Source of the DNA: Dimorphilus gyrociliatus
Lineage: Eukaryota > Animalia > Annelida
Assembly: GCA_904063045.1 (NCBI GenBank)
Contig: CAJFCJ010000005.1
Span: 4,374,436 to 4,438,435 of the forward strand
Direction of reading: 5' to 3'
DNA length: 64,000 nt
The first letter of the stretch is position 1; each line of letters starts with the position of its first letter. The position numbers and the translations under genes are program-made. This document shows positions 11,103 to 36,593 of the stretch, piece by piece. The notes below the pieces were generated by a model. The model saw only the letters and a list, made by a program, of their open reading frames with translations, did no database searches and was not told the DNA's origin.

Positions 11103-11356
11103 TTAAGCGTGTTTCAAGATGTTGTAGTAGCAGTTGGAGGAACCATTTTCGTGGCAAGCAGTCTCGTCAACTGGACAACAGTCGTGTTCATCTCCTCTGA
11201 TTGATGGACAGCATTTGAATCCGGCGTTGCAACAACCAGAAACGGTTGGCTCGTGCCAGCAGCAAATCTGACTGCCTGGTTGGCAAAAGTTGTCGGCGGG
11301 ACATCCCCATGCTCTGGTTGTGGTTGGAAGAGTGGTGGCTGCAAAAGGCAAAGAGT

Positions 11357-11396
<40 letters not shown>

Positions 11397-11451
11397 ACTT
11401 ACTGCAATAAGCGACAGCAACGAGAGCGGCGAGAGCAATCAACAATTTCAT
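11103..11451 (-). CDS. Small secreted 12-Cys granulin-like protein, copy A (exons 11451-11403, 11338-11103)
   Basis: Signal peptide MKLLIALAALVAVAYC, phase-1 GT-AG intron, then TTTLPTTTRAWGCPADNFCQPGSQICCWHEPTVSGCCNAGFKCCPSIRGDEHDCCPVDETACHENGSSNCYYNILKHA*. The gene model is solid; the granulin relationship is inferred from Cys order. Confidence 0.85.
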
Positions 11452-11528
11452 TTTTGGTTTGATTTGTAGTTCCTTGTACACTGCTACTAAAGAGTCAGAA
11501 ATGGATAATTAGTTCATTCAACCCGTTC

Positions 11529-11536
11529 CTTTTATA
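11529..11536 (-). promoter_or_regulatory. Candidate TATA box of granulin-like copy A
   Basis: TATAAAAG on the minus strand about 80 nt upstream of the ATG; identical in the duplicate at 36065-36072. Confidence 0.55.
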
Positions 11537-11905
11537 ATACTGAAATTTCAATGGGAAATGGCAGATAATAGATTTCGCTTTATCTTTATGTTGTTTTAAC
11601 TTTGACTGATCAAATTTCCACTATTAATAACATTTACACATTCTCTCCATCCATCTACTTTATTCTTTTTGAACAAAAAATAAAAAAAAAAAGAATTGAA
11701 TTATTTTTTTTTTCTTGAAAAAGAAATTCTTTTTTAATGACATCTGCTTCCTCACATAAAGTATACTTTATGCTTATCTTTGCAATTTTTACCTTTCTTC
11801 TTCATCCTTTCTATTCTTACTTTCTCTTTTTCAACGTACGATAGTTACATTCTGCCTTTGCCTTTTTGATATACTTTTAATCTTTGTCAGATATATAGCT
11901 ATACT

Positions 11906-11936
<31 letters not shown>

Positions 11937-12170
11937 TTATATATACTGTGTATTGCATTTTTATGCATGCATATATTATTGCTCTTTGCCATTCTCTTAG
12001 CTTTAGAATCTTTCATTTTCTATTCATATATTTGCCTATATCGTAGTTGTGTTCTCTCTTTCTCTCCAACTTTCTTTTTCGTTTTTCGACCTATCACTAG
12101 GCCTAATCAGCCAAAAAAAAAATTACTTCGACAGTTGGAATTTAAACGACATTTTGAAAAGAAAGAAGTT

Positions 12171-12625
12171 ATGACAATCAAGAAAGTTACTTTTCTTCTA
12201 GCTCTCTTTTCTCTTCTATACATTCTGAAGTTTTCGGGCAAGTTTAACTTTTTCCCCTCCACCCCTCGGCTTATTGGACAAACTTCTTATTAAAGCTTCC
12301 TTTACATATGATATTATATTCTAGTGCATTTATTTCTTTGTTTAAAGTTATCGGTTATTTTTGAAAGTATTATATTACAGAGTCTGCTTCGACCACTCCT
12401 CAATTTTACAATTGTCGACCTAACAACCCTTGCTCGTCGTCCGGTCAAGTTTGCTGCTGGGAAGAAGATGTTGTAGCGGGATGTTGCGAACCAGGATTTA
12501 GATGTTGCCCTTCGCAAACAGGAGACAATCACGACTGCTGTCCGGATTCTCAAGGTGTTTGTCACGAGAGTGGGGGAGCGTATTGTTATTTGGCGAAACT
12601 TGTTAACAAAAGAGGAAATTTTTAA
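12171..12625 (+). CDS. Small secreted granulin-like protein, copy B (exons 12171-12237, 12381-12625; GC-AG intron); absent from the ORF track
   Basis: Exon 2 reads SASTTPQFYNCRPNNPCSSSGQVCCWEEDVVAGCCEPGFRCCPSQTGDNHDCCPDSQGVCHESGGAYCYLAKLVNKRGNF*. Best exon 1 is MTIKKVTFLLALFSLLYILKFS ending G|GCAAGT. Exon 2 is certain; exon 1 is less so because another hydrophobic start exists at 11967. Confidence 0.8.
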
Positions 12626-13900
12626 TATAGAAAGAATTCTAAAAGATTTTTAGAATATTTCTTTAAAAGCAAAATATAAACCGTCTATTTTTTTATTTAT
12701 ACCTTTTCTCCACAATTTCAAAGCTCTGTATAACTACAAACAAGTCATTAATCTCATCCATTTTTCCTGTTCAACTCTTACTCTTTTTATCTTCAAAAAT
12801 CAACTACTATTATGAATGTTCATAGATGTTACTTTCGTATTTCGCCCCTTAACACTTTCTCCTCCTTCCTACGTTAATCGACGGATAGTTTATCTATTGG
12901 GAGAAGAAAACGAGACACGAAATGTGATTAAATTCGTATTGTAATCCTAGAAGAAATTCTATTAGGACAATTTTAGGTTTTCTTCTTTCTCTCTTTCCTT
13001 GTAGTGATGTCTTAGAATACTACTATTTTGTTATATAAGAGAGAGAGAGAGAGGGAGGGAGAGCGAGAGAGAGAAGACATTCAAGAGAAAGATATACAGG
13101 AATAATAAAAGATATTAATAGATCATGATTGATTTTTTTAATACAAATTGATATTTGTGATATTACTCTTTATTCATATAAATGTTAGTATACCTATGTA
13201 TACAGACACGTTTACATACATATACACATATTCTTCCCCTCTTAACCTTTTAACTCTATTCTCGTTCCTTTTGCCTTTTCCATTCTCTCTTTTAGTCTTT
13301 CTGTTCAATCAATATATTAAAAACGAATTCATTCGAAACAGCAAGGGAGATTGAAAGATTTTTAGCAGGGGTGGTAAGCAACAAACTAATGGGGCAAAAA
13401 ATATGATGTTAACGCTTCGTGGGTGTTTTAATCGTATGAGATAAAGGCCTATCTCTCTCTCTCTCTCTTCATTGTACTTTTCTCTCAAGTTAAATAAATA
13501 GTAAATCTGAACAGAGTCTCGAGAGAGTAGTTTGGACATTAATCGGAAGGGGAGGTGGAATTCTATTGAAACAAAATGAGTGGGAAGACGGGAGGAACCG
13601 TTAAGTATTGTTTAGAGAAAAATAACAAGAGACTGTTATCGAAAACTTTGAAGAAAAAAAGGGCAATAGGCCTAACTGATTAATGAATATTCAAGTTATC
13701 ATAAAAATTGATTAAAAGCGGTTACGCATAAAAGGAGATAAAATGTAAATGAATGTTTGTGTATGTATCTGATTGACATATGTTCGATATCTCACGCTCT
13801 TCGTGCCAGGTACCGCAAATCTCTACCTATTGACGCAAACAAAATCTGCAAATTTAAGGCCTTATTCATCTAATTCTTGGTTACGCTCTTAATTCAAAAC

Positions 13901-14331
13901 ATGTCTTTAACTATCAAATTTGCTATATTTTTCTCCTTTTGCTTAATTGCAAACGCCTATCCAGGTAAGTTTGTTTTGTTAATTCACTTTCTCTAACCCT
14001 TTCTCTCTCTCTCTCTCTCTCTGTATCTCTGCTATTCTAGTTTAATAGTTACATGGTATCTTTTTTTACAGGAAATCCGTTTCGTAAGGAAAATGACAGC
14101 TGTAGACCAAATAATCAATGCCAAGCAGTTGGACAAGTTTGTTGCTGGGAATTGGATCAATCCATTGGATGCTGTGAAAAAAACTTTAAATGCTGCCCTT
14201 CGCTTAGTGGAGATCGTCACAATTGCTGTCCGGTAAAAGAGTCCGAATGCAACAACAATAATGGAGCGTCTTGCTATCTTTTGAAAACAGTTTTAAAGAA
14301 AACTGGAAAAACTTCAGTAAAAGAGGATTGA
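13901..14331 (+). CDS. Small secreted granulin-like protein, copy C (exons 13901-13964, 14072-14331)
   Basis: Signal peptide MSLTIKFAIFFSFCLIANAYP, donor G|GTAAGT, then GNPFRKENDSCRPNNQCQAVGQVCCWELDQSIGCCEKNFKCCPSLSGDRHNCCPVKESECNNNNGASCYLLKTV...*. Confidence 0.85.
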
Positions 14332-15548
14332 TTTTAAAACAAAAAGTCTAATAGAAAAAAAGAGAGAGAGAGGCCATGGCTTGATTTTTATCTAAAATAG
14401 AATAAAAAAGATTGAACAAGACTCTACAGATATTTCTATCCCGTCTCTCTCTCTCTCTCTCTCCCTCTCTGTCTCCCTCTTTTGATTGCTAACATATGTG
14501 AGGGGTACACTCATTTATTTGCTGTACTCTCCTTCATCGTAATTTTTCTACTCTTACTCCTACTCCTACTCCTGCACAACAACTAATTTTTACTTAAACT
14601 ATCTTTTTATTCTCTTAAAAAAGAGATAGAAAACAGTTAAAGGAAGAAATAAATGATCAAGTTTTCTATTCCTTTTTTGACTGAATGAAATACAAAAGTT
14701 TCGATTGGTAGAAGGTCTTTAGGCCTCATTTAAATATCAGTTTATATATATATTATATATAAATAATAAAAATATAGCTTTAATTTTATCTTTAATCTTA
14801 TTTTTAAAATATTTTTTATATCTAAATAAAAGAACCGAGTCTTTTGATTTGTTCATTTTTCTCTATCTTTCCTCTCTCTCTCTCTCTCTCTATCTCTCGT
14901 CTTGAGCTCTTTCAAATTCAACTTTCTATCAAGTTTATATGCTATCTATATTTTAAGTATCCGCATTAAAAACAAGAAGCTAAAAAAACAGGTTATGCAA
15001 TCTTTTCGTCCTATTCCTCCTACTTGTCTTAGTCATTCCTAATCCAATCTATGTTACCATGACAAAGAGTCGGCCTAGGATAAAACTGAACTGAAATATA
15101 GATGCCTAGAAATTATAGTTCAATAGTAAAATCTGACGAAAAGAAAGAGAAGTGTAACAAGCGGGATAGACAATGATCTATGGAGATAAAAGATGGCTCT
15201 TTGATACATTCTCTCCAAGACTATAAATAGGTATGTATCATACGGTATGTATGTATATTTATTTGGCTTGTTGATATAGTAAAAACTAAACGGGAGCGCA
15301 AAGTGGAAACTTTAACTGCGTCGCCTAGTCGTTAAGTGATAAAAATAGCAGATGTCGCATTACATGTACCTAATTTTTGTACGCTTTTTTTTCCAAATAT
15401 ACATCATTTTGACCCAGATTTTAAATATGAATAAATTCTGATGTAACGATGATAGCTATCTTATTATTTCCTCAACTCTTATTCTGGAAACTAGTTCTTC
15501 CGATTTCCCTTTCTTTTTCTTTGCATTTAGAGAAATCCAGCTAATAAA

Positions 15549-15993
15549 ATGTTTTCAAAAGCAATCCTACTGTTCTTTTTACTCTTTTGCTTCTTCTTCT
15601 CTCTTCACCAAGCAAGGATGATTAGCAATTTACAAGAAACCACTCCACAATTTGGTAATTGCAGGTAAGCGTGAACAGCTTGAATGAATGAACGATTCAG
15701 ACAATTAATTGAACGAAATTGATAAATATAAGATAGAACCAATTGTAAATCCATTTTTGGATTAAAATACTCTTTTCCCCTCGGCTATTCCCTATTATAG
15801 ACCAGACAACACTTGCTCGATACAAGGTGAAATTTGCTGTTGGGAAAGCAATACAGTTAGCGGTTGTTGTGAAACCGGATATAAATGTTGCCCCTCCCAA
15901 TCAGGAAGTGCGCACGATTGTTGCCCAGAAAGTGATGAAACTTGTCAAGGATCGCAATGCTATTTGGCCAAAGTTTATAAAAATTACAATTAA
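15549..15993 (+). CDS. Small secreted granulin-like protein, copy D (exons 15549-15664, 15801-15993); absent from the ORF track
   Basis: MFSKAILLFFLLFCFFFSLHQARMISNLQETTPQFGNC(R)|PDNTCSIQGEICCWESNTVSGCCETGYKCCPSQSGSAHDCCPESDETCQGSQCYLAKVYKNYN*; phase-2 GT-AG intron. Confidence 0.85.
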
Positions 15994-18206
15994 TAAAGGA
16001 TAAGAAAAAGGGAAGAGAAGATAAGGAAGAAAATGAAGAAGAAGAAGAAGAAAAACAGCAATAATATTTAAAACCAAACCAAATAAAATATGATGATAAT
16101 TTTAGAATTGGAATTTTATTGATTTTTAAGGATTTTCTCTCTTTCCTCTCCTCTTTTTCTCTTCTCTCTTTTATTTGTTTTACATTTTTCACATCAATAC
16201 GCTTTTTCATTAAAATAAATACAATTTAGTTAAATAAAACAATCCTTCAGTCTTCGCCTATCCATCTATTTAAGTGATTTTGATATCTTCTTTATCATCT
16301 TCATTCTTCTTTCATATTAATGGAGGAAGGGAGAGGGAATAAATCAAAGTAATCTTATTAAATATGAACGCTTGGAAGGGAAAAACAAATATTCAACAGA
16401 TGGTAAAGAATAAATTAAACTAGTGGGTGTGTTCAGGGCAGTGTATCCTTTTTTAATATTAACAAAGCCAATAGATTAGTACTACTATACACTGTATCTA
16501 CACATTTCGTTGATGTGTTGAACGATGGCCAAATTTTTCAATTCTCCTTTCCTCCTATACGAGTAATAGGACAGAATATACAACATACAAACACTTGCAG
16601 ACTCTTTCTTGGCTTTAGAATAGTCATTATCGCTTTATTTATTTTTATTATTATTGTTATTATAGTTGCTTTTTATCTTATTGTTGTTTTCTTTATAAAA
16701 CTATATTATAGTGTATATACGAGATCCTATTCAATCATTAAATGAGCATGCTTTGTCTTCCTTGTCTCTTGCGTTTCCTTTAAACAGTTTACTTAATTTC
16801 TATTCATAGAAACATTGTATTTTTAATCAAAAGAAAGTTAATTTTAACTCTTTTGTCTGGCCTTTTTTGTTATTTATAGCGATGATACTTAAACCTATAC
16901 AGTATAAACTAATATATAATTATATTATATACACAGTATATATATATATATATATATATATTTGTATTTGTCTACTAAAGGAGAGAAAGATGAAGGAATT
17001 GCTTTAACTAATCTTTAAATCTTTTATATACGAGGATCCACTATAAGAAATATATTCAATTAAAAATAAACTGCTTTTCTCAAGGCTTGTAGTAAGTTAG
17101 AAAATATCGTTCAAGTGGCACTTGATCGGTGATATTGAGAGATAATTAAAGATTATATGTATCTATCTAACTATCTCTTTATTCTCTCTTTTACTAATTT
17201 TAATCTATAGTCTTTTCAATTGTAGTCAAGATGACTAGTAAATACAAATAAACTAGACGATATATTCCATTGTATAAACATTTCTTCTACCTCTTTTTTA
17301 CGTTGAGTAAAACTACTACGACTACTACTGGTAGTAGTATTACTACCAGTTTTACCACAGATATTCACTTGATACTATTTATCCCCATCCTTCTCTTAAT
17401 TCACTTGAAATCAATTCATTCTTTTTGTCTGAGTCATTCGTTAAACAGACCTTAAATGAGATAGCAGAATTTAGAAACATGACGTCAAAATACATAATCT
17501 CATTAGTAAATTGAAAAAGATAGTCAACCTGCAGACTTTTCAGATTGTTTTCGTTGAAAAGGCAAAAATAAAACTTTATACTGTATCTTTAATATAGATA
17601 AAAAATAACAAAACCAGAATTGCGACCACACCTCTCTCTCTCTCTCTCTCTCTTATTTTAACCTTTTAGACTTCATATGATTATTTTCTTTCTTTTTAGA
17701 TTTTCTCTTCTAGTGCCGACAACTATTTGAAAAAGTGTAATTAACTTTATTATAAGAATTAATCTACTTTAAAAGTTAAATTATGCCTTTAGAAAAAATA
17801 TTTCAAAGTAATAATTGAAAGAAAAGGACAGGTAAAAGTATAGAGGAACAGAGATAGATAGATAGATAGAGAGAAAGAGAAGAGAGAAAATGAATTAGTA
17901 CAAAAATATTTCACAAAGGTAACTCGTCAGTGTAAGAAAAGCTGTTGGTTTTCAGATTAAGCATTACGAATAAAGATCGAAATGGCCGCTTTATGTAAGA
18001 TTACTCTTTCTCGCAGACTAAACATCTATTCAAGCATATTTTAAGGAGCAACTTTACTATTCTTAAACAAATAAAATAAACAGTTAAGCAATAATGCCAT
18101 TTCACTTAAAAATCGTTTATTATTCAACATAGAAAAACTGATTCAATACAAAAGAAATTGTCTGCCAATATTCTTCAAAAACTAGTGTCAACCTTTTATT
18201 CTTTAG

Positions 18207-18237
<31 letters not shown>

Positions 18238-18770
18238 CAAGATATACTGTATATATATATAATATACATACTTTAAGTCATATTAACTTTGTCTGACTGA
18301 CCACACCCTGATTTAAATTGACTATAATTTTGTTCATTGTAAATTGAATTCGACCTATATATCCGAAACTATTACATCCTTTGATACCCTTCCCAAAAAA
18401 GCCAACAACAACAATTTCCCGTGGTTGTAATCGAAATCTCTCGATTTCCATTATGGATTATATCTTATCTGAAGTGGCTTATTAAAGAGAAAATTTTATC
18501 TCTTAGCTCTCCAATTAAACATGATTATTCAACAAATAACGTGAAATCATTGCACAATGTATGTATTTGAAAACATCTCTGTCTCGTCATATTATTGATG
18601 GACATCCATTTCTCCTAGTATAGGATAAATTTCAGAGTGAGGTCATACAGTATGTAGTTCTTTAATAAACTGCACTCCTCCCAGATAAAAAGAAATTAAC
18701 TTTATCGAATACATAAAATATTCTTATCTTATCGAGATATCTTAGATTACGCTTAATTAGTATTAGCCCT

Positions 18771-18777
18771 TATAAAA
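18771..18777 (+). promoter_or_regulatory. Candidate TATA box of the CBM14-(GS)n gene
   Basis: TATAAAA about 70 nt upstream of ATG 18845; common by chance in AT-rich DNA. Confidence 0.35.
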
Positions 18778-18844
18778 TCAATGGATTTTAAGCGATTTCA
18801 ATTTACTTTATCTTTTGACAGCAGTTGCAGTTGAAAAGTGAAAA

Positions 18845-19696
18845 ATGAAACTAGTTTTTATTTCTGTTCTTTTATCTATTGGTTTGTCTTTAACCTTGCT
18901 TAGCTTTACCTTGAAAATACTTTATCTAAACTTTTTCTTTTCCCTATTGTCTCATCAACAAATAAAGCTACTTGCTATGCCAATGAATGTATTGGTAAAC
19001 CAGACGGAACGCATGTTAATCAGGCTTGCAATTACTACGTCGAATGTCGTAATCAACAAGAATACCCTTTCTATTGTAATCCCCCATTGGTTTATAATCA
19101 TTTAAAACGAAGATGTGACAAGTATGTTGTGTTCAATAGGCTGTTCACTTTTGCTTAAAACATTTCTTTACCTTAGTCCAGAAAGTACTCCTCCTCCATG
19201 TGGACAACAAGAGAATTGCGATTCCCTACCCGATGGAAAATATCCCATTCTACGATTCCAATGCAGATGTTATTTCACCTGTAGATCATCTATAAATATA
19301 GGAACCCAATGCTGTCCGGGTGGTTTGTAAAATACTTTCAATTTTTAAATACAGTGAAATGATGGAATGAAATTTCTTTCAATAGGTTTGGTTTGGGATA
19401 TATTTTCCGGAGTTTGTAATTGGGATTATCAGGTTCCTCCACCGTGCGGAACCAAACCAGTGCCAACGCCTCCAGTCGAAACAACGTCTACTCCAGTCAA
19501 AACAACGTCTGCTCCAGCCGAAACAACGTCTTCTCCTGCGGAAACAACAACTATGGGAAGCTCAGGTTCAGGATCAGGCTCAGGTTCAGGATCAGGCTCA
19601 GGTTCAGGATCAGGCTCAGGTTCAGGATCAGGCTCAGGTTCAGGCTCAACTTCAAATTTTGACACAAATTTCGATGAATTTGTATTGATAAATTAA
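18845..19696 (+). CDS. Secreted chitin-binding protein: signal peptide, 2x peritrophin-A (CBM14), Thr/Pro linker, Ser-Gly repeat tail (exons 18845-18881, 18968-19121, 19177-19322, 19386-19696)
   Basis: Domain 1: CIGKPDGTHVNQACNYYVECRNQQEYPFYCNPPLVYNHLKRRCD. Domain 2: CDSLPDGKYPILRFQCRCYFTCRSSINIGTQCCPGGLVWDIFSGVCNWD, with the typical CBM14 ending CPxGLVW...CxW. All splice sites GT-AG and in frame. Confidence 0.88.
19562..19648 (+). repeat. Coding 18-bp tandem repeat (TCAGGTTCAGGATCAGGC)x4 plus a partial unit, encoding (SG)n
   Basis: Read directly; in frame within exon 4 of the CBM14 gene. Confidence 0.95.
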
Positions 19697-20010
19697 GTTT
19701 TGAAATAGGAAATTAAACTGTATATTGTATATAATAATATTAGAGAGAAGATATTCTTTAGGAAGATGTTTGAAATCTTTCTACTCCTTTATCTCTCTAT
19801 CTATCTATATTTGTCGTTTCTTTCTCGTCTCTTTGCAACCTGCAGAGAGAAGAGAAAGAAAGACAGAGAGAGAGAGAGAGAGAAATAAGCTATGTACCTT
19901 TTTAAATTAATAGATAATTCTAATAATACTTCATTAATTGAATAAAGAAGAATAATAGTAATCTTAAAGAAAAACTTGTTTCTAGATTTAATAGTAAATT
20001 CAGTAAATTT

Positions 20011-20025
20011 CCTGTAGATGGCAGC
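20011..20025 (+). promoter_or_regulatory. CTCF-like motif
   Basis: CCTGTAGATGGCAGC versus core consensus CC(A/G)(C/G)(C/T)AG(A/G)(T/G)GGC(A/G)(C/G)(C/T): one mismatch. Confidence 0.45.
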
Positions 20026-20637
20026 GTTGTTTAAAATAAGTCTATTGTTAACAAAAGTGAAAGTTATTTAACAATAGGAGGATGAATGGTTATTGATGAT
20101 AGAATGTTTCTATTTTAAAGAATTAACGAATTATGTAAAAAACAAGAAGAACAAAATGAATAGATTTATAGATTTTTTAATTAGTTTGTTTCTTTGTTTC
20201 ATTTGTTTTTAGATGAACAAAAATTTATTGATTTTTTTTTTTAAAAAAAAAATCTATTCCTTTTTTTTTTGGTTTTATTTTGTAAACTTTTTCTAAATTG
20301 ATAAGAAAAAAAGAAAAACAGGCTTAAAGCATTTACTCTGTTAGGCTTCAATTTGATCTATCTACAGTATGAGATGGAAGGCTAAATTTCGGAGAGGGTC
20401 AAAAGGAAAATAGTAGGGAGAGAGAGATGGGAGGGAGTGTTAATTTATATCTCTTCCTCTCCCCCCTAAATGTACAAGTATGTGATTAGTCAGATCTCTA
20501 TTGTATAGTTATTATCTCCGTTTATTAGATATTACATAATAGATGACGAAAGCTACCGATAGAATAAGATCGGTAACAGTTCTATAAAATAGCATTCATT
20601 TAAAATTCACTTTACGTATCATCGATTTCAATTTCGA

Positions 20638-20652
20638 CAAGCAGGTGGCGCT
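20638..20652 (+). promoter_or_regulatory. CTCF-like motif
   Basis: CAAGCAGGTGGCGCT versus CCAGCAGGTGGCGCT: one mismatch; same orientation as the site at 20011. Confidence 0.5.
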
Positions 20653-21817
20653 CTATGTTAAAAGTTCTTTAAAAAAGGATTTTTAAGGACTGATATATCT
20701 TATGCACGAAGGAAAATAATGATTTTTATTTACTTGATTAGTTTAGCTTCTCTCTCATTTTAATCTTTGTAAACTCTCCAATCTTTTATAATCTTTAGAA
20801 GATCTCTTCTCTTTCTCTCGTCTCTTCCTCTTTATTCTTCAGTGTCTAATTATCACTTGACTTGACTTTTAGAGATTTTGGCAGAAAGTTTTTTATTAAT
20901 GATGTCCGTAGTGGCCTTGTTTCTTAGCTTTAGTCAATAGGCATGTCTATGAAATGCAAATGGACACGTTACATCCATTCGGACATATTTGTTTTTATAG
21001 TTGATTCTATTCCTCCATCAACGTCTGGAAGAATCATCGATTACTTTGCAAAGAATGCAGCATATAGTTGGCAGAGAGAAAGCTAAAAGAGATGACGATT
21101 CAATCTCTGTACATTTAAAAGACTACCTACACCTAATACCTGACTACATTTAAACTTTAAACCATCATATACAGTAAACTGAATTGTGCAGAAAACAACC
21201 TTACCCTTTATTCTTTATACCCTAGAACTGAGACACATTCCCAAGTCTTTTCAGTTAACCCTTTCCTAACCTAGCCAAATCCTCAATTAAATTCTCCTAA
21301 CAGTATGAATATCTGGAATATCTGAAATCTTACGATGAATTCTCCCATGAGGAGGAGGAGGAGAAGAGGACATTTTCTCTATCATTTAGAGATAATAATT
21401 ATAGGGAAGAATTAACAATTGATACTATACAGTATAGATATATCCGGTATATTGAATATCTATGGTTGCAATACCAGGAAGAAGAGAGAGAGAAAAGGTG
21501 AGAAATATTGCAAGTGTATATTAAAATCCTTTAAGGCAAACATTAAGAAAATGTATATTTTTATATTAAGAGAAATAGAAAAGAAAGCTAGAAATATCAC
21601 TCCAAAATACATTATGATTAGTAGTAGTATAGAGGTAAAACATCAAAGAAAGAAGAGAGGTTTTATCTTTATTATCTTTTAACTCTTCCTCTTATTCTCC
21701 TTCTTAAAATTTTTCTCAAGAAAAATCTCTATATAGTATTAAATAAAAACAAAAACGCTTGTCTGCTTTTTTCCTCTCCTTTGACTTTGCCGTCTACTTG
21801 TTTTGTTTCATTCTCTT

Positions 21818-23325
21818 TCAGTTCTTCGGACCGAAGGCATTCATGAGTTCTAGATAAGAAATATAAAGTTAGGAACAGTTAAACGAATAGGAAATGCTTT
21901 AGTTTCATTCTCTTTCTAAAACTTACCAATCGGTAGAGGGAATATGATGGTGGAATTCTTTTCTGCTGATATTTGCGTTAGAGTTTGAAGATATCGGAGT
22001 TGGAGAGCTCCCGTAGCCTCGTTTATAACATCGGCTGCTTCTTTCAATGCTCTAGAGGCGTTTTGTTCACCTTCCGCCGCGATAACCTTTGCTCTAGCGT
22101 CCCTGGTCGCTTCTGCCTCTGCCGCCATAGCCCTTTGTAGTTGAACAGGTAGTCGTACATCCTTAATTTCAACCCTTTCAACTTTAACACCCCATGGATC
22201 AGTACCTAATGGGAAGAGACAAATTTGAAGAATGTCTTAGATGGATAATTGGTAGAAGAAGAGGAAGAGGAAGAGGAAGAAGAAGAAGCAGACGAATGTG
22301 ATAAAGAAAAACAACCAAAGACTATACAACAAAAAGGTGACTCGCAGTGGTTTACTTTCTAGCAGAAACTTACCCTCATCAAGGACAATCTGAAGATGAA
22401 ATAAAACAATATATAGAGTAAAAATTCAAGATTATATAGTAGAGTATTGGATAGCAGAATAAAAGAGAAGCAGTCTACTTGTACAGTCTACAACTGTTGC
22501 ATATACAATATACTGTATATTGTATTCATTTAAATAAAGGTACATTTTACTGGATTTGTTTTATTTAGTGTCTGATTCTGTCATTCAATATTTACCTGCA
22601 TATTATTCGCTACTGTTTCCCTTTCTGTTAGAATATCGCTTAGCGTTTTTGTTCCTAAAATATTTCTTAATGTTGTTTGGGCTAAAAGGCGAGTTGATCT
22701 GGAACAATCTTCCACATTCACTACGGAAATCATTGGATTCGAAATTTTATAATAAACAACTGCATCAACCGCAATTGTTACCGAATCCTTTGTTAGAATC
22801 TCTTGAGGTGGAACGTCAAAGGAAACCGTACGCAAATCAACTTTGACAAAATGATCCAAACAGGGTATAATAAAGAATATTCCGGGTCCTCTAGACCCGG
22901 AAAGAACTCTTCCAAGTCTAAACATAACCGCTCTTTCGTATTCCTGTACGAGCTTTACGCACATGAATATTGAAATTGGAAAAGTTAAAAAGATAAGAAG
23001 GAGTGAAATTCCTTTCAGGATTATCTAGTAGCGGGAAAAGAATTATTCATTTAAGTTATAGCTGAAGAAGGAATAGAATAATTAGATAATTATACTGTAG
23101 ACTTACACCGCAACATCCAAGACTGCCTCCTCCTCCCTTGATCGTAACATTGTCGTCTGATTAATTTACAGAGTTAGGTTATTGAAAAAAAGAAAAGAGA
23201 AGAGGAAGAAAAGCATTTTTGTTTAAAAGTTGTAACTTTTTCAATTAGAAAAAGAAACGTATAGAAGATTTAAATAAGATTATTTCTGCATAGCTAACTG
23301 ATCATTTACCTTTCGAATTATCCAT
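21818..23325 (-). CDS. STOM: Stomatin/band-7 (SPFH) protein, paralog 1 (exons 23325-23310, 23156-23107, 23024-22596, 22389-22374, 22205-21927, 21849-21818)
   Basis: GCCG, hairpin segment [10 protein letters not shown], then [14 protein letters not shown]...[31 protein letters not shown]...[23 protein letters not shown]...LQLRYLQTL...[12 protein letters not shown]. Complete reading frame with two 16-nt micro-exons. Family-level symbol. Confidence 0.92.
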
Positions 23326-24760: not shown

Positions 24761-25680
24761 ATGCGAAAGATAGCTACAATCCTTCTTCCACTTTTCGGTA
24801 TTTTTCATTCATTGCCCTCTTCACCTGTTTCATTAGTCCTATTTTATAGCTTACACTCTGGCCAACGATTGCATTGGTAAACCCGACGGAACTCATGTTC
24901 ACCAAGCTTGTAATTACTATGTAGAATGTCGTAATCAACAAGAAGTTCCCGTCTATTGTAATCCACCATCGGTTTATAATCATGTGAAGAGAAAATGCGA
25001 TAAGTAAGTTATATTCTGTTCATTCTATCCGGCAAATTTGTTCGGATAATAACGAGAAAATCACCGATCAGTCCTCAGAACACACCACCTCCTTGCGGAG
25101 CTGAAGAGAAGTGCGATGGTTTGCCAAACGGAAGGTATCCCCTATTGAATCTTCAATGCCAATGCTATTTTACTTGTCAAGGAGGCACAAACATTGGAAC
25201 CCAATGCTGTCCAAATAGTTAATATTTCATTCAATAATTAATCCAAAATGAATATCGTTTGTAATCCATCTTTTCCTTTGAAATTCATTTATATTAGATT
25301 TGGTTTGGGATGTATTTACCGATGTATGTAATTGGCCAAATCTAACGCCTCCACCTTGCGGAACTAAACCACCAGAGATTCCTCTTCCCACTACAGCAGC
25401 ACCCCTGCCTACTACTAACACACCAAAGCCTGCTACTACTCAGGGTGCAATTCCTCAAACAACTTCACAATTTGGCTGTCCGCCTACCAATTTTTGCCAA
25501 TCAAATCAAATATGCTGCTGGCATAAACCAACTATTTCTGGTTGTTGTAACAGCGGTTTTAAATGTTGTCCATCGATAAGAGGCGATGACCATGATTGCT
25601 GTCCAGTAAATGAAGTCGGTTGTCACGAAAATGGCAGTTCTAATTGTTATTATAATATTTTGAGAACATCTAATAAATAA
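24761..25680 (+). CDS. Chimeric secreted protein: signal peptide, 2x CBM14, Pro/Thr linker, granulin-like 12-Cys domain (exons 24761-24797, 24850-25003, 25072-25217, 25298-25680)
   Basis: MRKIATILLPLFAYTLA-NDCIGKPDG...CCPNNLVWDVFTDVCNWP...PQTTSQFGCPPTNFCQSNQICCWHKPTISGCCNSGFKCCPSIRGDDHDCCPVNEVGCHENGSSNCYYNILRTSNK*. The end of CBM14 domain 2 and the Cys domain lie in one uninterrupted exon. Confidence 0.88.
24850..25376 (+). repeat. Direct repeat, about 527 bp, partner at 26625-27151 (offset 1775)
   Basis: Near-identical exons 2-3, introns 2 and 3 (68 and 80 nt in both copies) and start of exon 4. Confidence 0.92.
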
Positions 25681-26489: not shown

Positions 26490-27191
26490 ATGATCAAGAT
26501 AATTGCACTTATCTTGCCATTTTTTGGTAGATTACGATTATTATGATTTTCTTTTGTCTCTTTCAAAAATTTTCATTCTTGAAGAGTTATCGTTAAAGTC
26601 GAATATAATTTTCGTATTTCGCAGTTTACGCTTTGGCCAACGATTGCATTGGTAAACCCGACGGAACTCATATTCACCAAGCTTGTAATTACTATGTAGA
26701 ATGTCGTAATCAACAAGAAGTTCCCGTCTTTTGTAATCCACCATCGGTTTATAATCATATGAAGAGAACATGCGATAAGTAAGTTGTATTCTATTCATTC
26801 TATTCGCTAAATTTGTTCGGATAATAACGAGAAAATCACCGATCAGCCCTCAGAACACACCACCTCCTTGCGGAAATGAAGAGAAGTGCGATGATTTACC
26901 AAACGGAAGGTATCCCCTATTGAATCTTCAATGCCAATGCTATTTTACTTGTCAAGGAGGCACAAACATTGGAACCCAATGCTGTCCAAATAGTTAATAT
27001 TTCATTCAATAATTAATCCAAAATGAATATCGTTTGTAATCCATCTTTTCCTTTGAAATTCATTCATATTAGGTTTGGTTTGGGATGTATTTACCGATGT
27101 ATGTAATTGGCCAAATCTAACGCCTCCACCTTGCGGATCTAAACCACCAGAAGCTACTCCTACCCCTTCTCTAAAGGCTAATCCGGAATAG
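26490..27191 (+). CDS. Secreted 2x CBM14 protein with a short tail (exons 26490-26526, 26625-26778, 26847-26992, 27073-27191); absent from the ORF track
   Basis: MIKIIALILPFFVYALA-NDCIGKPDGTHIHQACNYYVEC...CCPNSLVWDVFTDVCNWPNLTPPPCGSKPPEATPTPSLKANPE*; same exon lengths (37/154/146) as its two paralogs. Confidence 0.87.
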
Positions 27192-29597
27192 TCGATAAAT
27201 AACGTACGTAGCAACTTTACAAATTGGATCTGTTCTTCAGCCGCTTTTTGGTTTCTACAATCTAGAACTTTGACTATATCGTCCATCGTTTAGGGTCGAA
27301 AAACGAAATTGTTGGTTTATCGTCTATATATCCAATTGGAAGTTTTTTAAATCGTTATTACAACACCTTAATACAAATATATATATAGTTTATACTGTAT
27401 AAAGTATACTGTAGAACGCAATAAATGCATTAGTTGACCGTTTAAGGAATCCATTAGGCTTTTTGGTTTCAACACTTTTTGCATTAATTATTGAATTCTT
27501 CTCTAATTATATAAAAAATATCTGAAAGAAGCTTGGTTTGTATGCGTCAGACATAAAAAAAGTGTACGTTAGTTTGTATAGTAAACGATTACCAAGAGAG
27601 AATATAGAGACGTAACGATGTTCTAAGAACGATTATCGAAATCTTAATTAAAGTAACCAAGTAGTAATTAGTTATTATTACAATATAATTCGGTAAGGTT
27701 ATGTAATCCTGCTCGATACGCACTACATCTCTTGCTTTATCTTACTGAATCTATTTCTTTCAATTATCTTATCCGAAAAAGGTTGCTCTTTTACTGATAT
27801 CATTCTGAAGACATCGTATGCAATATCATACGATTAATGAATATTTAAATTTATTCATTAGTTCTATTAATTTCTCAGCTAATCTATTAGAAGAGAATAG
27901 TTTGTAGACCTGTTGTTTGGTAGTTTGACAGTGTTTTCCTTTTCTTTGCTCAGTTTGAGTTATATCGATGCACGCTTAACAAGGAAGGTATACTTTTATT
28001 GATATTACTATAGAGACTATCCTTTTATTCTTAATAACTGGAAGAAATGGAAGAGAAGACTACGCAATGAAATATAACCTTCTATATTTCATCAATCAGG
28101 AAATTGCCTATCTAGGATTTTTAGTGGGGAGTAAGTTTTGTTGCTAGTATAATCATCTAATATTTGGTTCCTGTACGGATTGACTTTGAAATACTATCAT
28201 CACTACTTGAGGAGCAATGAAGATGAGTTTGTCCCAAAGATTAATAATATTATTCTAAAGCAAACACTATATTCCCAACTATCTAGATATTGCGCAACAA
28301 ACGTCCTATTACAATGATTTAGCGTCGCTGCCTGCTTTTTATATTGTAGTAAATGGAAAAATATAGTTAATAATTCTCTCTGTTAATGAAGAGAGAATTT
28401 CACGCTATTAATGAAAATTAGGAGGCAAACCCCGATAAAGCATTGACCCTGCGCACCTAGGTGGACCTAACTATAATCTATATATACAGTATATATTGTA
28501 TATAAATCTTTGTTTACTTTACCCTTAAACTAATTAGACCCAACCCTAACTGTTGTAACTGTTGTATCCTTACAACCGCGCGAATGTTTCTCATGAATGC
28601 ATCCTAATTAACACGTAATAATCAGGTAAGAAGAGAGTATAAATGTCATTTTAGGTAATTGTAACGATAGTAATTATTATAGTTAATTAATTAATTATCG
28701 CCAATGCACCAATCCAGATAAAATCTTTATCAATAAAACAATGCAGAGGTAAAAAATTAATGATTTTTTTTTATTTAACATTTTCACTTGACAAAAATTT
28801 TGTAATCTAATGTAAAAAACAAACAGAACAGCTCTTCTTTTTATGGAGAGAGGGAGAGAGAAGAGAGGAGGATGAGGAGGAGGAGGAGGAAAGGAAAGAG
28901 AAATAAACAGGAGAAAATATAGTCATCTTTTCTTTATGAATGAAAGCTAAAAGTGAAACGTAAGGAAAATGTAGTAATGATTGATGGATAGGTTTAAATG
29001 GGGTCAACAATCAACAACAGTAACACATTGCTGCTGAATTGCATACATTTCAATATGTATGTTATAGATGCATGTCTAATAGATATACAGTATATATTAA
29101 TACATAAATTTATACACACTGTATGTACTAATATATATTGACCGGTAAATAGGTGAGATTCCAACTATGCGTTTAATATTTAATTGTAATAATACAACAT
29201 TCATAGTTCGAGTTATTTGCATAACGCTAGTATATATATAAACACCAATATACGAATACATAAATATATGTATATATTTATAAACAACTATTATTTATTC
29301 ATAGTTTTGAAGGTTTCATAAATAAAACTGCTATTGGTCATTGCCAGTTATTTTATTTATTGATTAACAAGTTATTACTGTCTAACTTTCAATATATTCA
29401 ACAGAAATTGATTTATTTGGAAAAGCTGATAATATTCCAGTATGGTGCCAGTCTTATAAATAGATGGAAACCGGTTCCATTAATATGAATAAATCAGATA
29501 TTGAATTAGAACCAGTCTAAAATCTCTATCGTTTTAAGCCAAACATTCGATGGTACCCTAAAAAACATAAACAACTGTTATTTGGGATAAATTCGAA

Positions 29598-31726
29598 ATG
29601 GAAAATTCCGAAGGTAAGATTATTAGTTATTCTAGTATTTATTCGTTGTAGTTGCAGCAGCTGTATACGAACGCATACGTAAATATATAACAAAGTCATC
29701 TCCATCCTATATACAGTATATGTAAATTGTACTGTATATAAGGATAAACAGTATACATATATTCTCTTTACTATACCAAACACGACGGATAAAGAATGAA
29801 ATTATAAGAAGATTTACAATCTGCCGTGTTTGTACATTCTAATTTAAATAGTATAATCCGTATGTAAAGTTTATATTTATCCAGTCTATCTAGGAAACAT
29901 ACCAACTAGTTTGTATATATAGATATACAAGTATATGTAGAGAAGGAATAGACGTAAATTATTTATTGTTTTTAACTACTTACTTCTACCAAACATTTAA
30001 AAGGAAAAGATTAAGAAGAATGAGGAGCAGAACAGAGAGATGCTTGCCCTTTTTTTTTAATTAAAAATGAATAGTTCAAGTAACCTTGGAAACGATTTAA
30101 TAATTTCAATATTCGAATCCTCCTCCTCTCCTTCTTTCTATTGCTAAATTACCACCTATTTGGGGAACGGATACAAAAAACAACTACAATATAATTTACC
30201 TATCTAGATGGAGAGGGAAAGGGAAATCGATACGAAGGGAACTTTATAGACGGTGTAAAAGGAATTATTGATTCTTCATGTAAAATTGATTAATGTAATA
30301 ACGTATGTATTTGTTGACTTGACAATTCATCATTTACTAATAACATTACAACTTAGAGCGTGTATTGCGTAATAAATTTATAGAGATTTACTTATAATTA
30401 TCCAATTTTCTGTGTATTCTATCATCAAGTTCAACCGTATTCATAATATCATTTTTTTTCTTATTTTCTCTCTCTCTCTCTCTCTCTCCCTCTCTCTCGC
30501 TCTCTTTAGCAAGAAAATACGATAGTGAAGGCGATGATTCGGGATGTTGTGGAGTGAGTAGTTTATACATTCATCCATCCATTACATAATTTCTATTGTT
30601 CACAGATAATACTCAAAGTTATTTCATTGGTTTTAATCGTTATCACTTTCCCCATATCAATTTGTATGACTCTGAAAATTGTACAAGAATACGAAAGAGC
30701 TGTTATGTTCAGACTTGGAAGGGTTCTACCCGGAGCCAGAGGACCTGGGATATTTTTTATAATACCTTGCCTCGATAATTTTGTCAAGGTTGATTTACGT
30801 ACAGTCTCCTTTGATGTTCCCCCTCAAGAGATTCTCACCAAGGATTCCGTAACGGTTGCCGTAGACGCAGTTGTTTATTATAGAATATCGAATCCTATGA
30901 TATCGGTGGTAAACGTTGAAGACTGTTCCCGATCGACCCGCCTCTTATCCCAAACAACGCTGAGAAATATTTTAGGGACAAAGACCCTAAGTGATATATT
31001 ATCAGAAAGAGAAACAGTTGCCACCAATATGCAGGTAGGAGAAGGGACAGAGATAATGAAAGAAATCTCTAATTAAAATTGGAATAAATTTACTATTCCC
31101 TCTCTTCCCCTTACAGAGCGTCCTCGATGAAGGCAAGTCTTTATAAGAGGGAAACGGACCTCTCTTTTCTTGTTGTTTATATAGAATACTGTATTTGTTA
31201 AACATTAAACAAACAAACATAACGAATGTTACATTCGTTCTATAAAAATCTATATACAGCGCATAAAGTCAGAATGATTATTTACCCCATTCGCTTTTAT
31301 ATTTAGGAACCGATCCGTGGGGTGTTAAGGTTGAAAGAGTGGAAATAAAAGACGTTCGTCTACCAGTTCAGCTGCAAAGAGCTATGGCGGCGGAAGCCGA
31401 AGCAACTAGAGATGCTAGAGCTAAAGTAATTGCGGCCGAAGGTGAACAAAATGCCTCTAGAGCACTAAAAGAAGCGGCCGACGTAATAAGCGAAGCATCG
31501 GGTGCCCTTCAGCTAAGATACCTACAAACACTCACACAAATATCGGCAGAGAAGAATTCGACAATAATCTTCCCTCTGCCAATTGGTTAGTCATTTATTT
31601 CTATTCAAATATTTATAATCAAAATTCTTCTCTTGTAAGAATTTCCTCTTTTTTGGCGTCAATTTTTCAATCATTTCCTTCTCTATTCCAGAATTGATGA
31701 GTGCTTTTATCGAAAGGAAGAAATAA
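29598..31726 (+). CDS. STOM: Stomatin/band-7 (SPFH) protein, paralog 2 (exons 29598-29613, 30510-30553, 30606-31034, 31117-31132, 31307-31585, 31692-31726)
   Basis: Exon 1 ATGGAAAATTCCGAAG|GT mirrors ATGGATAATTCGAAAG|GT of paralog 1. Exon lengths 16, 429, 16 and 279 are identical between the paralogs. The exon 4 donor is GC (GAAG|GCAAGT). Ends [11 protein letters not shown]. Confidence 0.92.
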
Positions 31727-32862
31727 AGCATCGAAATTACTACGATTATATATATATTTTAACTTTCAATTGTCGAGAATCTCTATACGAAAACAAGAGT
31801 ACATACTAACTACATACTGTATACAGTGGTGTGCGAATGTATGTATGGTATGTATCTATCTGTATGTACCTGTATACTTTTTCTATTTAAGGCCTATATA
31901 TATATAAATATGTACTGTTGTTTCTTTTTTCCTTTTTTGTTATTCTAGTATTAAATGTACTTTTTTGTTGGTTTTTTTCCTTTTGTTGTTTTTGAGATCT
32001 CTGCATTTTGAACAATGTTGAATAGTTTGTTTTTCTTTTTTTCCTCCATTTCTTTAGTTAGTTATGTAAGGGAAAAGAATTAAAACATCTTTCAACATTT
32101 GTCCTATAAATAACATACTCTTTTCAAATTTTCAACCATATATGTATATACATAAATATATTAACTTCTACAGTATATACATCTATTGTTGACATTTCTA
32201 TAAATGTACTATGAATGTATAAGGAAAACAGTTTAGTGTTTGGGAATTTCATCAAAATTTTTGATAATAAACTGCCATCGCTATAATTGAATTAATTATT
32301 TCTTACGCAACTTATACTAGACATTCGTCAGGCCCTTTTATCTTGAATTAAATTAAATGAGGAAAGGTTAGAAGGATATAGAAGGAGGGAGGGAGGGATG
32401 AAGATTACAGGTAAGCAGGTTTTCTCCTTCTTTTTACCTCCACCGTAAACATTTTCTCATTGTTTTTCTCCCTTTGCAATTATATAATTATTAATTCATT
32501 GAAAGTAGTCCAACAATTTTATCACGTTTAGAATAATCAATATCCTCTACCGCTGTCTCTAAGATACTATAGACCTATTATTTATAAATAGGCTTATTTT
32601 TAAAACGTTTATAGCATCACTTGGAAATGAAAGGAAAAAGAGAAATCTCTCATCAGGCGAGGTTTCTACTAAATCTATTTATAAAATATAAAATCTATAT
32701 AACCCCAATACGGTTGTAAAGTATAATAGTACTATCATTTTCTTGATTAACTTTTAATTATCATAACAATATCGATATATGGAAAAAGCTTAATTTTGAT
32801 GGTGGAAAATAGGCAGGAAAAATTCTCATACCATATGTCTATCGCCAGCCTTTTCAACTTGT

Positions 32863-32878
32863 TAACCCTAACCCTAAC
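32863..32878. repeat. Short interstitial telomere-like repeat (TAACCC)2TAAC
   Basis: Read directly. Confidence 0.6.
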
Positions 32879-35800
32879 TCTTAGCATAACCTTTACTTAA
32901 CATTAATTCATACTTTACTTACGAAAGTATGCTCTTCAATAGACTAGAACGATTCTTTAATGGATTTTGATTTCTTTTCTTCCAAAACTACTTATACGGA
33001 AGGAGAAATCATGAGTAGTTGTTGAAAATGTAAATATACAATATACTGTATATGTATTGAATGCGTAATTATGATTTTTCAACATTTTATAAACATTTCT
33101 CATTTCATGACCAAGACATTCAGTAATCTCTTTTAATTCTTCTTTTCTTCTTCTTCTTCTTCTTCTGATTCTTCCTGATCAGCCGTTAGGCCAATTTTAG
33201 TCTGAAAGGTTTTATTCTAGACTAATGACGTATGATAATATAGAAAGGTTACGATTGCCGCCTGACTAGAATGGAATTATGGAAATATGTTCAAAGAAAA
33301 TCTAACCCTGGAACAAACTCAATGTCTTATTATTCAGTATTTCTGGTAAAATATCTAATGGATTAGTGATTTTAGGCTCTGTTTAAGAATTTCCAAGTAC
33401 AAAACTAAAATTTTTTTCTTATTGTTAGCCAAGGGCATAAATTCATGAATATTTATGAGATATTAAAGATTACAAGGAACAAGGCAGAAAAAGGTCAATA
33501 TCGTAGTTTGCGCTCATCTCGTCTGCTCTTCCCTAATTACGTCTCAAAATCGCATAGCTAACCGTGACCTCCAACTATACGTTCCAGACGAATAATTCAA
33601 CCTTTCCCAGCTGTAATTCGGCACGTATTGCAAGTTTAGTATTGAAAGTATAGCTCTTACATAATGAATTATATTTAACAATATCCGCATATTGCTGATT
33701 TAATTGAAAAAAGATCAACTATCTAACAATACACATGAAATATATAGATATACAGTTTATTAAGAATATTCTGTGAATTCTTCTCTTAGCCGCTGTTGCG
33801 AAAGAAATTAAACGTTGATCGACTTCATAATGTATGATGAAAATATATATTGAGCAGCATACAATACCAATGTACAGCCTAACCAATCAGCTACATTCCC
33901 ATTTTCATATCTGCAAATAGAACAAGAGTATAGAACGTAGAGAGAACAATGATTAATTTCATTTCTGATGATTATCCTACTAACTTTGTATCGTAATTTG
34001 TAGAACAGAAATGCAGTTTTCCATCCGGACTAGTCCGAAGTTTTACATGAAAATACAAGTGCCAAATGAAATTAATCCAAAATGAGATGAAAACTCCATA
34101 ATAGATAATGGAATATAATTTCTGTTGAATTGTTGCTTGATATTTGAATAGGGCGAAGAGAAAATCTAGGCTTAGAATTAAAAACGATGTACACAGCGGT
34201 AAAACTGCTATCAGGTTCTATCCAGGTAGCCTATTCGTATATATAATAACGATTATAGAATTTTAATACAATTTTTACAATAATAGATTAACTATTACTT
34301 ACAAACTATCAAAGATGGTCGTCAAGCAAACCTTATGACGAAAATCACTGGAATTGTATTCTTTCTTTATAGTTTATTGTTAATAGAAGGAAAAATATTA
34401 AAAGTCCACAAGAAATGTTACAAATTGCAATAAAACAAATTTCAAAATTGATTAAATTCTCTATGATTTTCTTTTGACAAATTTCTCTTAGTTTCTTCAT
34501 GTTTAACGGAGAAATAAGCCCTATATATTCCGACATTTAGCCTATTCAATTCTTAAATAGAATAATCCGAATATATGTCATGTAAATGAGCTGTGTTGGC
34601 AGAGTATAGAAATACGCGTTATTTTTCGAATATAAACAGATATTGGAAATTAGACAGATTGATGGAAACTTTTTAAAAATCGTCTCTATTAATAACAGTT
34701 TATCGATTATTGAAAACGTAAAGAATATTGAGAAAATGGAATATAACGAAGAGGAATTTTGCTTAATAACTACACTTCATAAGTTGTAAGTAGTAAACAA
34801 TTAATATCGAATTAATACGATTACGATATGTCTAATAATCATTACAAAGAAATAATCCTCTCAACTATAAACTGTTACTTATGACGGCAGTCTTTGCATT
34901 AAATCTAATGATGAGTATTCAAACTATCCTCTTACACAACACTCGGCTACTGTCTACTTATCGTAAACTAATTGCAACTGGACAATATATAGCCATCGTT
35001 CAAATTGGAATTCTCCTCTCCTTTTATATAATCTTTATAAATTGCGTAATTGATGAATCACTTGGAAAGTTGAAATTTTGTCCAAGAAATCAAGTAAAGA
35101 AAATGTAGGCTGACAGAAATTTAATATATTCTAATTAAACTGCTTGTTTCGTTTTATTTTTCTTTTATACGCTTGGAGTAGTAGAGGATTTTAAAGATGT
35201 ATTGCAATGTTTATTCGCCGTCTGCCTAGTAGCTGCCATTTTAGTTTTACATTTTTACTCTACACTGGAAAGGATGAGTAGAAAGCCATGCTCCACTACT
35301 TTTGCCACCAATGTGGTTTAAGCCGACATCAGAATAAGGCAATTTCACATTTTTATCAACAATACATATAAATACATAAACAGTAATATCTATCTTTGTG
35401 AAACAATGTCGAAACAATGTCAAAAACCGCGATAAGAAAAAAACATTTTTTCTTATCTTATCTCACTTTTTCTTGAACAATTCATTTTCATTTGTTTTAA
35501 AGAGACTATGAAGACAAACAACGTGATTTTAATTAATCCATTCATAGATTTTCAATTTAGGAAACTTTATATTTTACATCATTAATAGTTCTATGCTTTA
35601 TGATATTCCATTCAAATAGGATTGTTAACTTTAACAATTTCATAATCATATATGTGCAAGTTCATTTCATACACTCTCAACAGTAAATAGTCAATTATTT
35701 TCCATTCTAATATATGTATTTATTAAATACATTTGACATTCTTATTCAGAATTCGTGAATTAACAGATGGTTTTAACATAAAGATAATCTGATACTCCTC

Positions 35801-35929
35801 ATTCACATTGGATTCTTAAATACATAGCTCTACTATTGTTATTTCAGTGAAATGGTGTGATAAGACTGGATACATATAATGGGAAAATACAGATGGGAAA
35901 AGCTAATAGACATTTGCTTCATTTCTTTC

Positions 35930-36593
35930 CAAAAAGAATAAAGTAGATGGATGGAGAGAATGTGTAAATGTTATTAATAGTGGAAATTTGATCAGTCAAA
36001 GTTAAAACAACATAAAGATAAAGCGAAATCTATTATCTGCCATTTCCCATTGAAATTTCAGTATTATAAAAGGAACGGGTTGAATGAACTAATTATCCAT
36101 TTCTGACTCTTTAGTAGCAGTGTACAAGGAACTACAAATCAAACCAAAAATGAAATTGTTGATTGCTCTCGCCGCTCTCGTTGCTGTCGCTTATTGCAGT
36201 AAGTAGTCTCTCTCCCTCTCTCTCTCCCTCTCTCTTACAAACTCTTTGCCTTTTGCAGCCACCACTCTTCCAACCACAACCAGAGCATGGGGATGTCCCG
36301 CCGACAACTTTTGCCAACCAGGCAGTCAGATTTGCTGCTGGCACGAGCCAACCGTTTCTGGTTGTTGCAACACCGGATTCAAATGCTGTCCATCAATCAG
36401 AGGAGATGAACACGACTGTTGTCCAGTTGACGAGACTGCTTGCCACGAAAATGGTTCCTCCAACTGCTACTACAACATCTTGAAACACGCTTAAACTGCT
36501 CTTTCAATTTCAATAAATTTCATTTAAAAATCAATCTCTCTCTTATTTATTATCCACTTTTCAATCATCTTTCTTTTCTACATAGTTCTCTTT
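35930..36593. repeat. Inverted repeat, arm 2 (664 bp; partner at 11004-11671)
   Basis: See arm 1. Confidence 0.95.
36150..36494 (+). CDS. Small secreted granulin-like protein, copy A' (exons 36150-36198, 36259-36494)
   Basis: Same protein as copy A except CCNTG instead of CCNAG; intact splice sites. Confidence 0.85.

Follow-up and report, generated by a model that had tools for sequence, protein, structure and literature searches.

A lineage-restricted family of small twelve-cysteine proteins, predicted to be secreted, in the annelid Dimorphilus gyrociliatus

Six genes with a twelve-cysteine domain

The stretch of DNA that we analysed is 64,000 nucleotides long and comes from the genome of the annelid Dimorphilus gyrociliatus (GenBank assembly GCA_904063045.1, contig CAJFCJ010000005.1, positions 4,374,436 to 4,438,435 of the forward strand). 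An intronless open reading frame of 587 amino acids in it (46162-47925) is encoded residue for residue on this contig, and a paper gives Dimorphilus gyrociliatus, a miniature annelid, as the source of the assembly. This 64-kb stretch, called the window below, is AT-rich (28-37% G+C) and contains six copies of a domain of about 58 residues with 12 cysteines. Five of the copies are stand-alone genes of two exons (genes A, B, C, D and F), and the sixth is the last part of a fused gene (gene E). An earlier note, made by reading the same DNA, had listed six copies and a motif shared between them. A six-frame scan for the pattern of four CC pairs returns exactly six matches in the window, all at the places given in that note, and the shared motif fits six out of six. 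No seventh or decayed copy was found when the six domains were searched against the window with tblastn.

In all complete domains the 12 cysteines follow the order 1-1-2-2-2-2-1-1 (C, C, CC, CC, CC, CC, C, C). The spacings between consecutive cysteines in the six window copies are 5; 5-6; 0; 8; 0; 5; 0; 9; 0; 6; 4-7, and 20 of the 65 columns of the domain alignment are invariant. The short motif TT(P/S)QF precedes the domain in three copies (B, D and E), as had been reported.

The proposed division into five two-exon genes and one fused copy stands, with one correction. In genes A, B, C and F the signal peptide and the domain are encoded by separate exons, between which lies a phase-1 intron of 60-143 nt (Table 1). 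In gene D, however, the phase-2 intron lies directly after the first cysteine of the domain (Cys1) and not after the signal peptide. The intron of gene A has GT-AG ends, and the phase-1 intron of gene B is of the GC-AG type with the donor GCAAGT, which is the usual form among GC-AG donors. For genes A, C and F the predicted exon boundaries agree with the database proteins P0007, P0002 and P0001. Genes B and D, which the earlier note had already described as missing, have neither an entry in the protein collection nor a called gene in the record. The precursors of the stand-alone genes measure 94-107 amino acids and are thus longer than the 80-90 amino acids first suggested.

Signal peptides were called where the protein starts with a hydrophobic segment and continues into a polar mature chain, a criterion that we also applied by eye to the N-termini of P0001 and P0002. 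The maximal Kyte-Doolittle hydropathy over 10 residues is 2.6-3.3 in the exon-1 products of the five stand-alone genes and 1.9 in the 12-residue first exon of gene E. The stand-alone products carry N-terminal signal peptides and are predicted to be secreted.

Genes A and F lie in an inverted duplication, whose arms of about 710 bp are 97-98% identical and 24 kb apart. The proteins encoded by the two genes differ by a single residue. Hence, there are five distinct sequences among the six copies. A (CT)n microsatellite is present in the introns of A, C and F, and the A and F copies of the duplication differ mainly in the length of this run.

Table 1. Positions of the genes and other features in the window (position 1 is the first letter of the window)
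Feature	Position	Strand	Parts	Remarks
Gene A (DgyrCDS4124, 94 aa)	11103-11451	-	exon 1 11403-11451 (signal peptide); intron 11339-11402; exon 2 11103-11338; 12-Cys domain 11127-11303	spliced product equals database protein P0007; annotated in NCBI record
Gene B (unannotated)	12171-12625	+	exon 1 12171-12237 (signal peptide); intron 12238-12380; exon 2 12381-12625; 12-Cys domain 12413-12589	read from DNA
Gene C (DgyrCDS4125, 107 aa)	13901-14331	+	exon 1 13901-13964; intron 13965-14071 (phase 1); exon 2 14072-14331; 12-Cys domain 14101-14277	spliced product equals database protein P0002
Gene D (unannotated)	15549-15993	+	exon 1 15549-15664 (signal peptide, TTPQF, Cys1); intron 15665-15800; exon 2 15801-15993; 12-Cys domain 15660-15963, split by the intron	orthologue of a related genome on L003 has the same intron position
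Gene E (fused form)	24761-25680	+	exons 24761-24797, 24850-25003, 25072-25217, 25298-25680; 12-Cys domain 25477-25650
Gene F (DgyrCDS4131, 94 aa)	36150-36494	+	exon 1 36150-36198; intron 36199-36258; exon 2 36259-36494; 12-Cys domain 36294-36470	spliced product equals database protein P0001
Conserved non-coding block upstream of gene D	15338-15490	+		78% identity with L003 121-279
Inverted-duplication arm 1	10979-11688			holds gene A and its flanks (about 240 bp on the upstream side, about 125 bp on the downstream side)
Inverted-duplication arm 2	35913-36618			holds gene F
Neighbour G1 (unannotated)	18845-19696	+		CBM14-type paralogue of gene E; Pro/Thr and (Gly-Ser)n tail; no 12-Cys domain
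Neighbour G3	26490-27192	+		93% tandem duplicate of the 5' part of gene E; short tail; no 12-Cys domain

One copy is fused to chitin-binding domains

The context of the fused copy was absent from the earlier note. The product of gene E begins with a signal peptide, which is followed by a CBM14 domain and by a second, CBM14-like module with six cysteines, interrupted in the gene by the last intron. A Pro/Thr-rich linker then leads to the 12-Cys domain at the C-terminus. The product of exon 2 matches the Pfam family CBM_14 (PF01607) with 33.9 bits, above the cut-off of 22.1 (E value 3.4e-08). With its signal peptide, its CBM14 domain above the Pfam cut-off, its second six-Cys module and its Pro/Thr-rich linker, gene E resembles peritrophin-type CBM14 or mucin-like proteins, and two CBM14 paralogues (G1 and G3) lie nearby. 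Unlike CBM14, the 12-Cys module has no Pfam match, and the stand-alone genes are without any CBM14. The architecture of CBM14 and 12-Cys domain is also present on the L004 contig of a related genome, and is therefore conserved in a second species. Among annotated Dimorphilus proteins, none with a fused 12-Cys domain was returned by the exhaustive profile search of 1.84e9 representative proteins described in the next section.

Relatives and conservation

With HMMER we compared a profile built from the six domains with 1.84e9 representative proteins of all lengths, so that longer kin and fusions were covered. In our searches the spliced models were used exon by exon. The profile search returned six matches, of which five are true relatives (P0001 to P0005). 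The relatives have E values between 1e-13 and 2e-31 against this library, so the similarity within the family is far beyond chance. Two of them, P0001 and P0002, are proteins of the window itself (genes F and C). P0003 is the domain exon of a D-type gene from short Logan contigs, and P0005, likewise from a Logan contig, is the final exon of a CBM14 fusion gene. P0004 comes from a catalogue of marine eukaryote metatranscriptomes (ERR1711976), which means that a relative is transcribed. The sixth match (P0006, 1512 amino acids, 24 matching stretches) was rejected as a repeat artefact.

Further searches did not enlarge the family. A word-based search of a 5.8e9-sequence collection with the family alignment found only four family members and no addition, exon 2 of gene B, used as the query in a word-based search for homologues, had no match, and among metagenome contigs 447 pattern matches included no relative. 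Searches of the literature yielded nothing relevant on Cys-rich proteins of Dimorphilus or on a combination of granulin and chitin-binding in annelids. Judging from these searches, the six genes of the window are all that can be detected of the family in this genome, and the family is lineage-restricted and otherwise almost absent from public protein space. It is also undescribed: Pfam has no family for it, and its members are named by DgyrCDS numbers only. This agrees with the earlier suggestion of a lineage-specific, undescribed family of disulfide-rich secreted peptides.

The Logan contigs with relatives are AT-rich genomic DNA (25-29% G+C). They come from a close relative, because three features of the window are kept: the D-type orthologue on L003 has its intron after Cys1, the fused architecture is the same, and the orthologue shares a non-coding block with the region upstream of gene D. 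This block, about 160 bp long, shares runs of perfect identity with L003. It occurs only once in the window, and GATA-like and E-box-like words are found in it. Scans of the window, including this block, gave no Rfam or tRNA match. The block is a candidate cis-regulatory element, either an enhancer or a promoter.

When the relatives are included, 17 columns are invariant across nine sequences from at least three sources. These are 11 Cys columns together with an Asn, a Trp, two Gly, a His and a Pro. The Cys1 column is incomplete in this alignment because Cys1 is encoded by exon 1 in D-type genes; accordingly, the domain exons of D and P0003 show 11 cysteines. The domains are acidic, with isoelectric points of 4.1-5.8, net charges of -1 to -6 and 3-6 aromatic residues each.

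We also compared the proportions of nonsynonymous (pN) and synonymous (pS) differences. In every diverged pair pN lies at 0.13-0.44 and pS at 0.56-0.94, with silent sites mostly saturated. For A versus E, pN is 0.135 and pS 0.94, and for D versus its orthologue the values are 0.21 and 0.78. Saturation at silent sites bars estimates of dS for most pairs, and our claim is limited to pN being far below pS. All copies are under purifying selection: the genes are maintained, and their loops bear no sign of an arms race. The G+C content at third codon positions is 0.51 in A and F versus 0.24-0.35 in the other copies, which might reflect codon selection in highly expressed genes.

Comparison with granulins

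The published granulin motif reads C x5-6 C x5 CC x8 CC x6 CC x5 CC x4 C x5-6 C (PMC1310530). The granulin fold is a stack of four beta-hairpins with six disulfides, and granulin modules are typically split into exons for their N- and C-terminal halves (PMC4527844). Our family, relatives included, has gaps of 5; 5-6; 8 (9-10 in two relatives); 5; 9; 5-6; 4-7. The order of the cysteines is the same as in granulin, intervals 1-3 fit the motif (x5, x5-6, x8) and interval 7 overlaps with it (x4-7 versus x5-6). The family also shares with granulin (PF00396; structures 2jye and 6cku, and the N-terminal subdomain peptide 1g26) an acidic residue, Asp, and a His just before the fourth CC pair and a Pro after it, the predicted beta-hairpins, and the occurrence as a small secreted module in single-module proteins.

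Three of the seven spacing intervals fall outside the motif, and all three are in the C-terminal half. Two of these differences, x5 instead of x6 and x9 instead of x5, had been pointed out before; the third, x5-6 instead of x4 after the fourth pair (x6 in all window copies), had gone unmentioned. The family further differs from granulin by a residue between the His and the fourth CC pair and by a Trp directly after the first pair. Unlike the half-module exons of granulin, a single exon carries the whole domain in A, B, C, E and F, and in D only Cys1 is split off.

Sequence searches did not connect the family to granulins either. The comparison with Pfam Granulin (PF00396) that the earlier note had proposed gave no match at E<=10 with any of the 11 sequences tried (P0001 to P0005 and the copies A to F), a null that is limited by the HMMER filters, which discard most matches above an E value of about 0.1. 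No other relevant Pfam family matched the six copies and five relatives at this threshold. Searches of PDB sequences with phmmer and hmmsearch, using three single domains, two relatives and two profiles, retrieved no solved granulin at E<=10, and there is no granulin among the library-wide profile matches. The PDB sequence matches that were obtained, such as a spider toxin at an E value of 4.8, are due to chance.

An AlphaFold2 model built from six sequences (model 1) reached a pLDDT (predicted local distance difference test) of 72. Foldseek placed the granulins 1g26, 2jye, 6cku and 9mxe among the top nine PDB matches of this model, but the matches are partial and not significant, with E values of 3.6-8.2 and probabilities of at most 0.08. 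A second model from a deeper alignment (model 2) is more confident (pLDDT 82.9; predicted template modelling score 0.67) and has clear beta-hairpins, with strands at 19-24/27-31, 35-39/46-50 and 68-71. There is no granulin among the 50 PDB matches listed for model 2, the best of which has an E value of 2.2. The Foldseek comparison proposed in the earlier note hence yields granulins for model 1, below significance, and none among the matches listed for model 2.

A comparable case is known from Nematostella, where an SGNH-hydrolase protein has a 12-Cys C-terminal region with granulin-like order and atypical alignment, attached to an unrelated domain; it has been discussed as 'degenerate granulin or convergence' (PMC4527844). 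That region is recognised by blastp as granulin-like (E value 5e-05) and our family is not, the two being compared by description only. The earlier idea of a modified granulin is partly supported. The likeness in Cys architecture, including the spacing of the N-terminal half, is real, whereas membership in the granulin family is unsupported and a shared fold is a possibility. We infer that the granulin-type arrangement of cysteines goes back either to very remote homology or to convergence.

Discussion

Our results describe a family that is predicted to be secreted, rich in disulfides, conserved and lineage-restricted, and that has one chitin-binding, mucin-like fusion. These properties suggest that the 12-Cys domain may be a disulfide-locked extracellular binding module that acts in a chitin or mucin matrix, either tethered or free. 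We give this reading, the likeliest of those considered here, a probability of about 0.45, somewhat less than even. The 12 cysteines would form six disulfides and thereby lock a stack of beta-hairpins, and the resulting module would be compact, acidic, protease-resistant and extracellular. The fixed surface residues (Asn, Trp, two Gly, His, Pro and the aromatic residue before the third CC pair) could form a binding face. The site of action would be a secreted matrix containing chitin or mucin, such as the gut lining, the egg capsule or epidermal mucus. In such a matrix the fused protein would be tethered via CBM14, and the stand-alone proteins would be free.

Several points weigh against a matrix-binding role. 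The link to chitin comes from one conserved fusion and two neighbouring CBM14 paralogues that do not have the domain, and a chitinous matrix in Dimorphilus gyrociliatus is itself presumed. The Dimorphilus proteins are predicted from genomic DNA, and their fold class is likewise a prediction, since Foldseek finds no significant structural neighbour for either model. Small Cys-rich modules also serve many unrelated functions.

One could also argue that the domains are true but very divergent granulin or epithelin modules that act like the single-module granulins of other organisms, as secreted regulators either growth-factor-like or directed to the lysosome, and that the fused copy was captured by a chitin-binding protein. 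The 12 cysteines in granulin order, the partly fitting spacings, the Asp/His pair followed by Pro and the four granulin entries in the first Foldseek result all speak for this, and the literature accepts atypical 12-Cys variants and single-module proteins as granulins (PMC4527844). Nevertheless, we consider it doubtful, given the failure of single sequences and profiles alike to find Pfam Granulin, solved granulins or library granulins, the three deviating spacings, the undivided domain exon and the disappearance of the granulins from the listed matches once the model becomes more confident. It is similarly possible to combine both ideas. The family would then be an extremely divergent granulin branch whose C-terminal half was rebuilt in dinophilid annelids, and which serves as a matrix module behind chitin-binding domains. 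This combination seems unlikely to us.

The earlier note had regarded variable loops on a fixed scaffold as typical of peptides in defence, toxins or matrices. According to the defence or toxin explanation the products would be host-defence or toxin-like peptides, in which a fixed disulfide scaffold carries fast-evolving loops directed against microbes or prey. Small, secreted products of tandemly duplicated, lineage-restricted genes would fit, and the loops do vary from paralogue to paralogue (in 24 of 66 domain columns no residue reaches a majority). The pattern of substitutions is against this, however. All diverged pairs have a pN far below their pS, with no sign of diversifying selection, and between the A/F and E domains few amino acids have changed: they are still about 76% identical, though their silent sites are saturated. 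The domains are also acidic and not cationic, the copy number is low, and one copy is part of a matrix-type protein. We therefore regard a role in defence or predation as quite unlikely. That the copies are decaying duplicates or chance open reading frames without function is highly improbable. Two copies (B and D) are unannotated and the donor of gene B is the non-canonical GC, but GCAAGT is the usual form of such donors, all six frames are intact with 12 cysteines each, purifying selection is strong, and the orthologues in the second genome keep the gene structure.

If a matrix-binding module is indeed what these genes encode, then they provide a compact, naturally minimal 12-Cys scaffold that is in no domain library and that is confined to a miniature annelid lineage and one marine planktonic transcript. 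The family would be a new entry in the catalogue of disulfide-rich modules. It would also be a test case for whether the granulin Cys ladder was reached twice or diverged beyond recognition. If the combined reading, a granulin branch that serves as a matrix module, were true instead, gene E would be the first architecture to join granulin with CBM14, and the hairpin stack of granulins would gain a new role other than that of a growth factor. Many invertebrate genomes contain secreted Cys-rich families specific to their lineage, however, and the broader importance of this one is therefore moderate. The conserved fusion to chitin-binding domains is nonetheless a concrete lead on function. The genome annotation can be corrected as well, with two genes missing and the fused domain in no annotated Dimorphilus protein found.

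Neighbouring genes

The region around gene E contains further CBM14 genes and a pair of stomatin-type genes. G3 falls within an annotated CBM_14 model of 358 amino acids, which ends at the G3 stop and starts upstream of 26150. This model is longer than the exons of G3 allow, and hence may merge neighbouring CBM14 genes. A stomatin model of 294 amino acids spans 19429-22964 on the strand opposite to G1. The stomatin-type (Band_7/SPFH) genes form an inverted pair at 21916-22964 (-) and 30627-31591 (+), with DNA about 80% identical, and flank the CBM14 genes E and G3 on both sides.

Just upstream of the cluster lie a gene of 709 amino acids with a cyclic-nucleotide-binding domain (3901-7788, -) and a gene of 172 amino acids (8214-8897). 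The other end of the window, from 43475 to 64000, is occupied on both strands by a cluster of paralogous receptor genes that combine LDL-receptor class A domains, leucine-rich repeats and a rhodopsin-type seven-transmembrane region (LGR-like). With tblastn the 12-Cys domains also have weak matches at 51443-51604 and 59310-59423; these correspond to exons for LDL-receptor class A domains in the receptor genes and do not belong to the family. At 46162-47925 (+) there is an annotated, intronless open reading frame of 587 amino acids, with no Pfam family on record, that by eye has the look of leucine-rich repeats.

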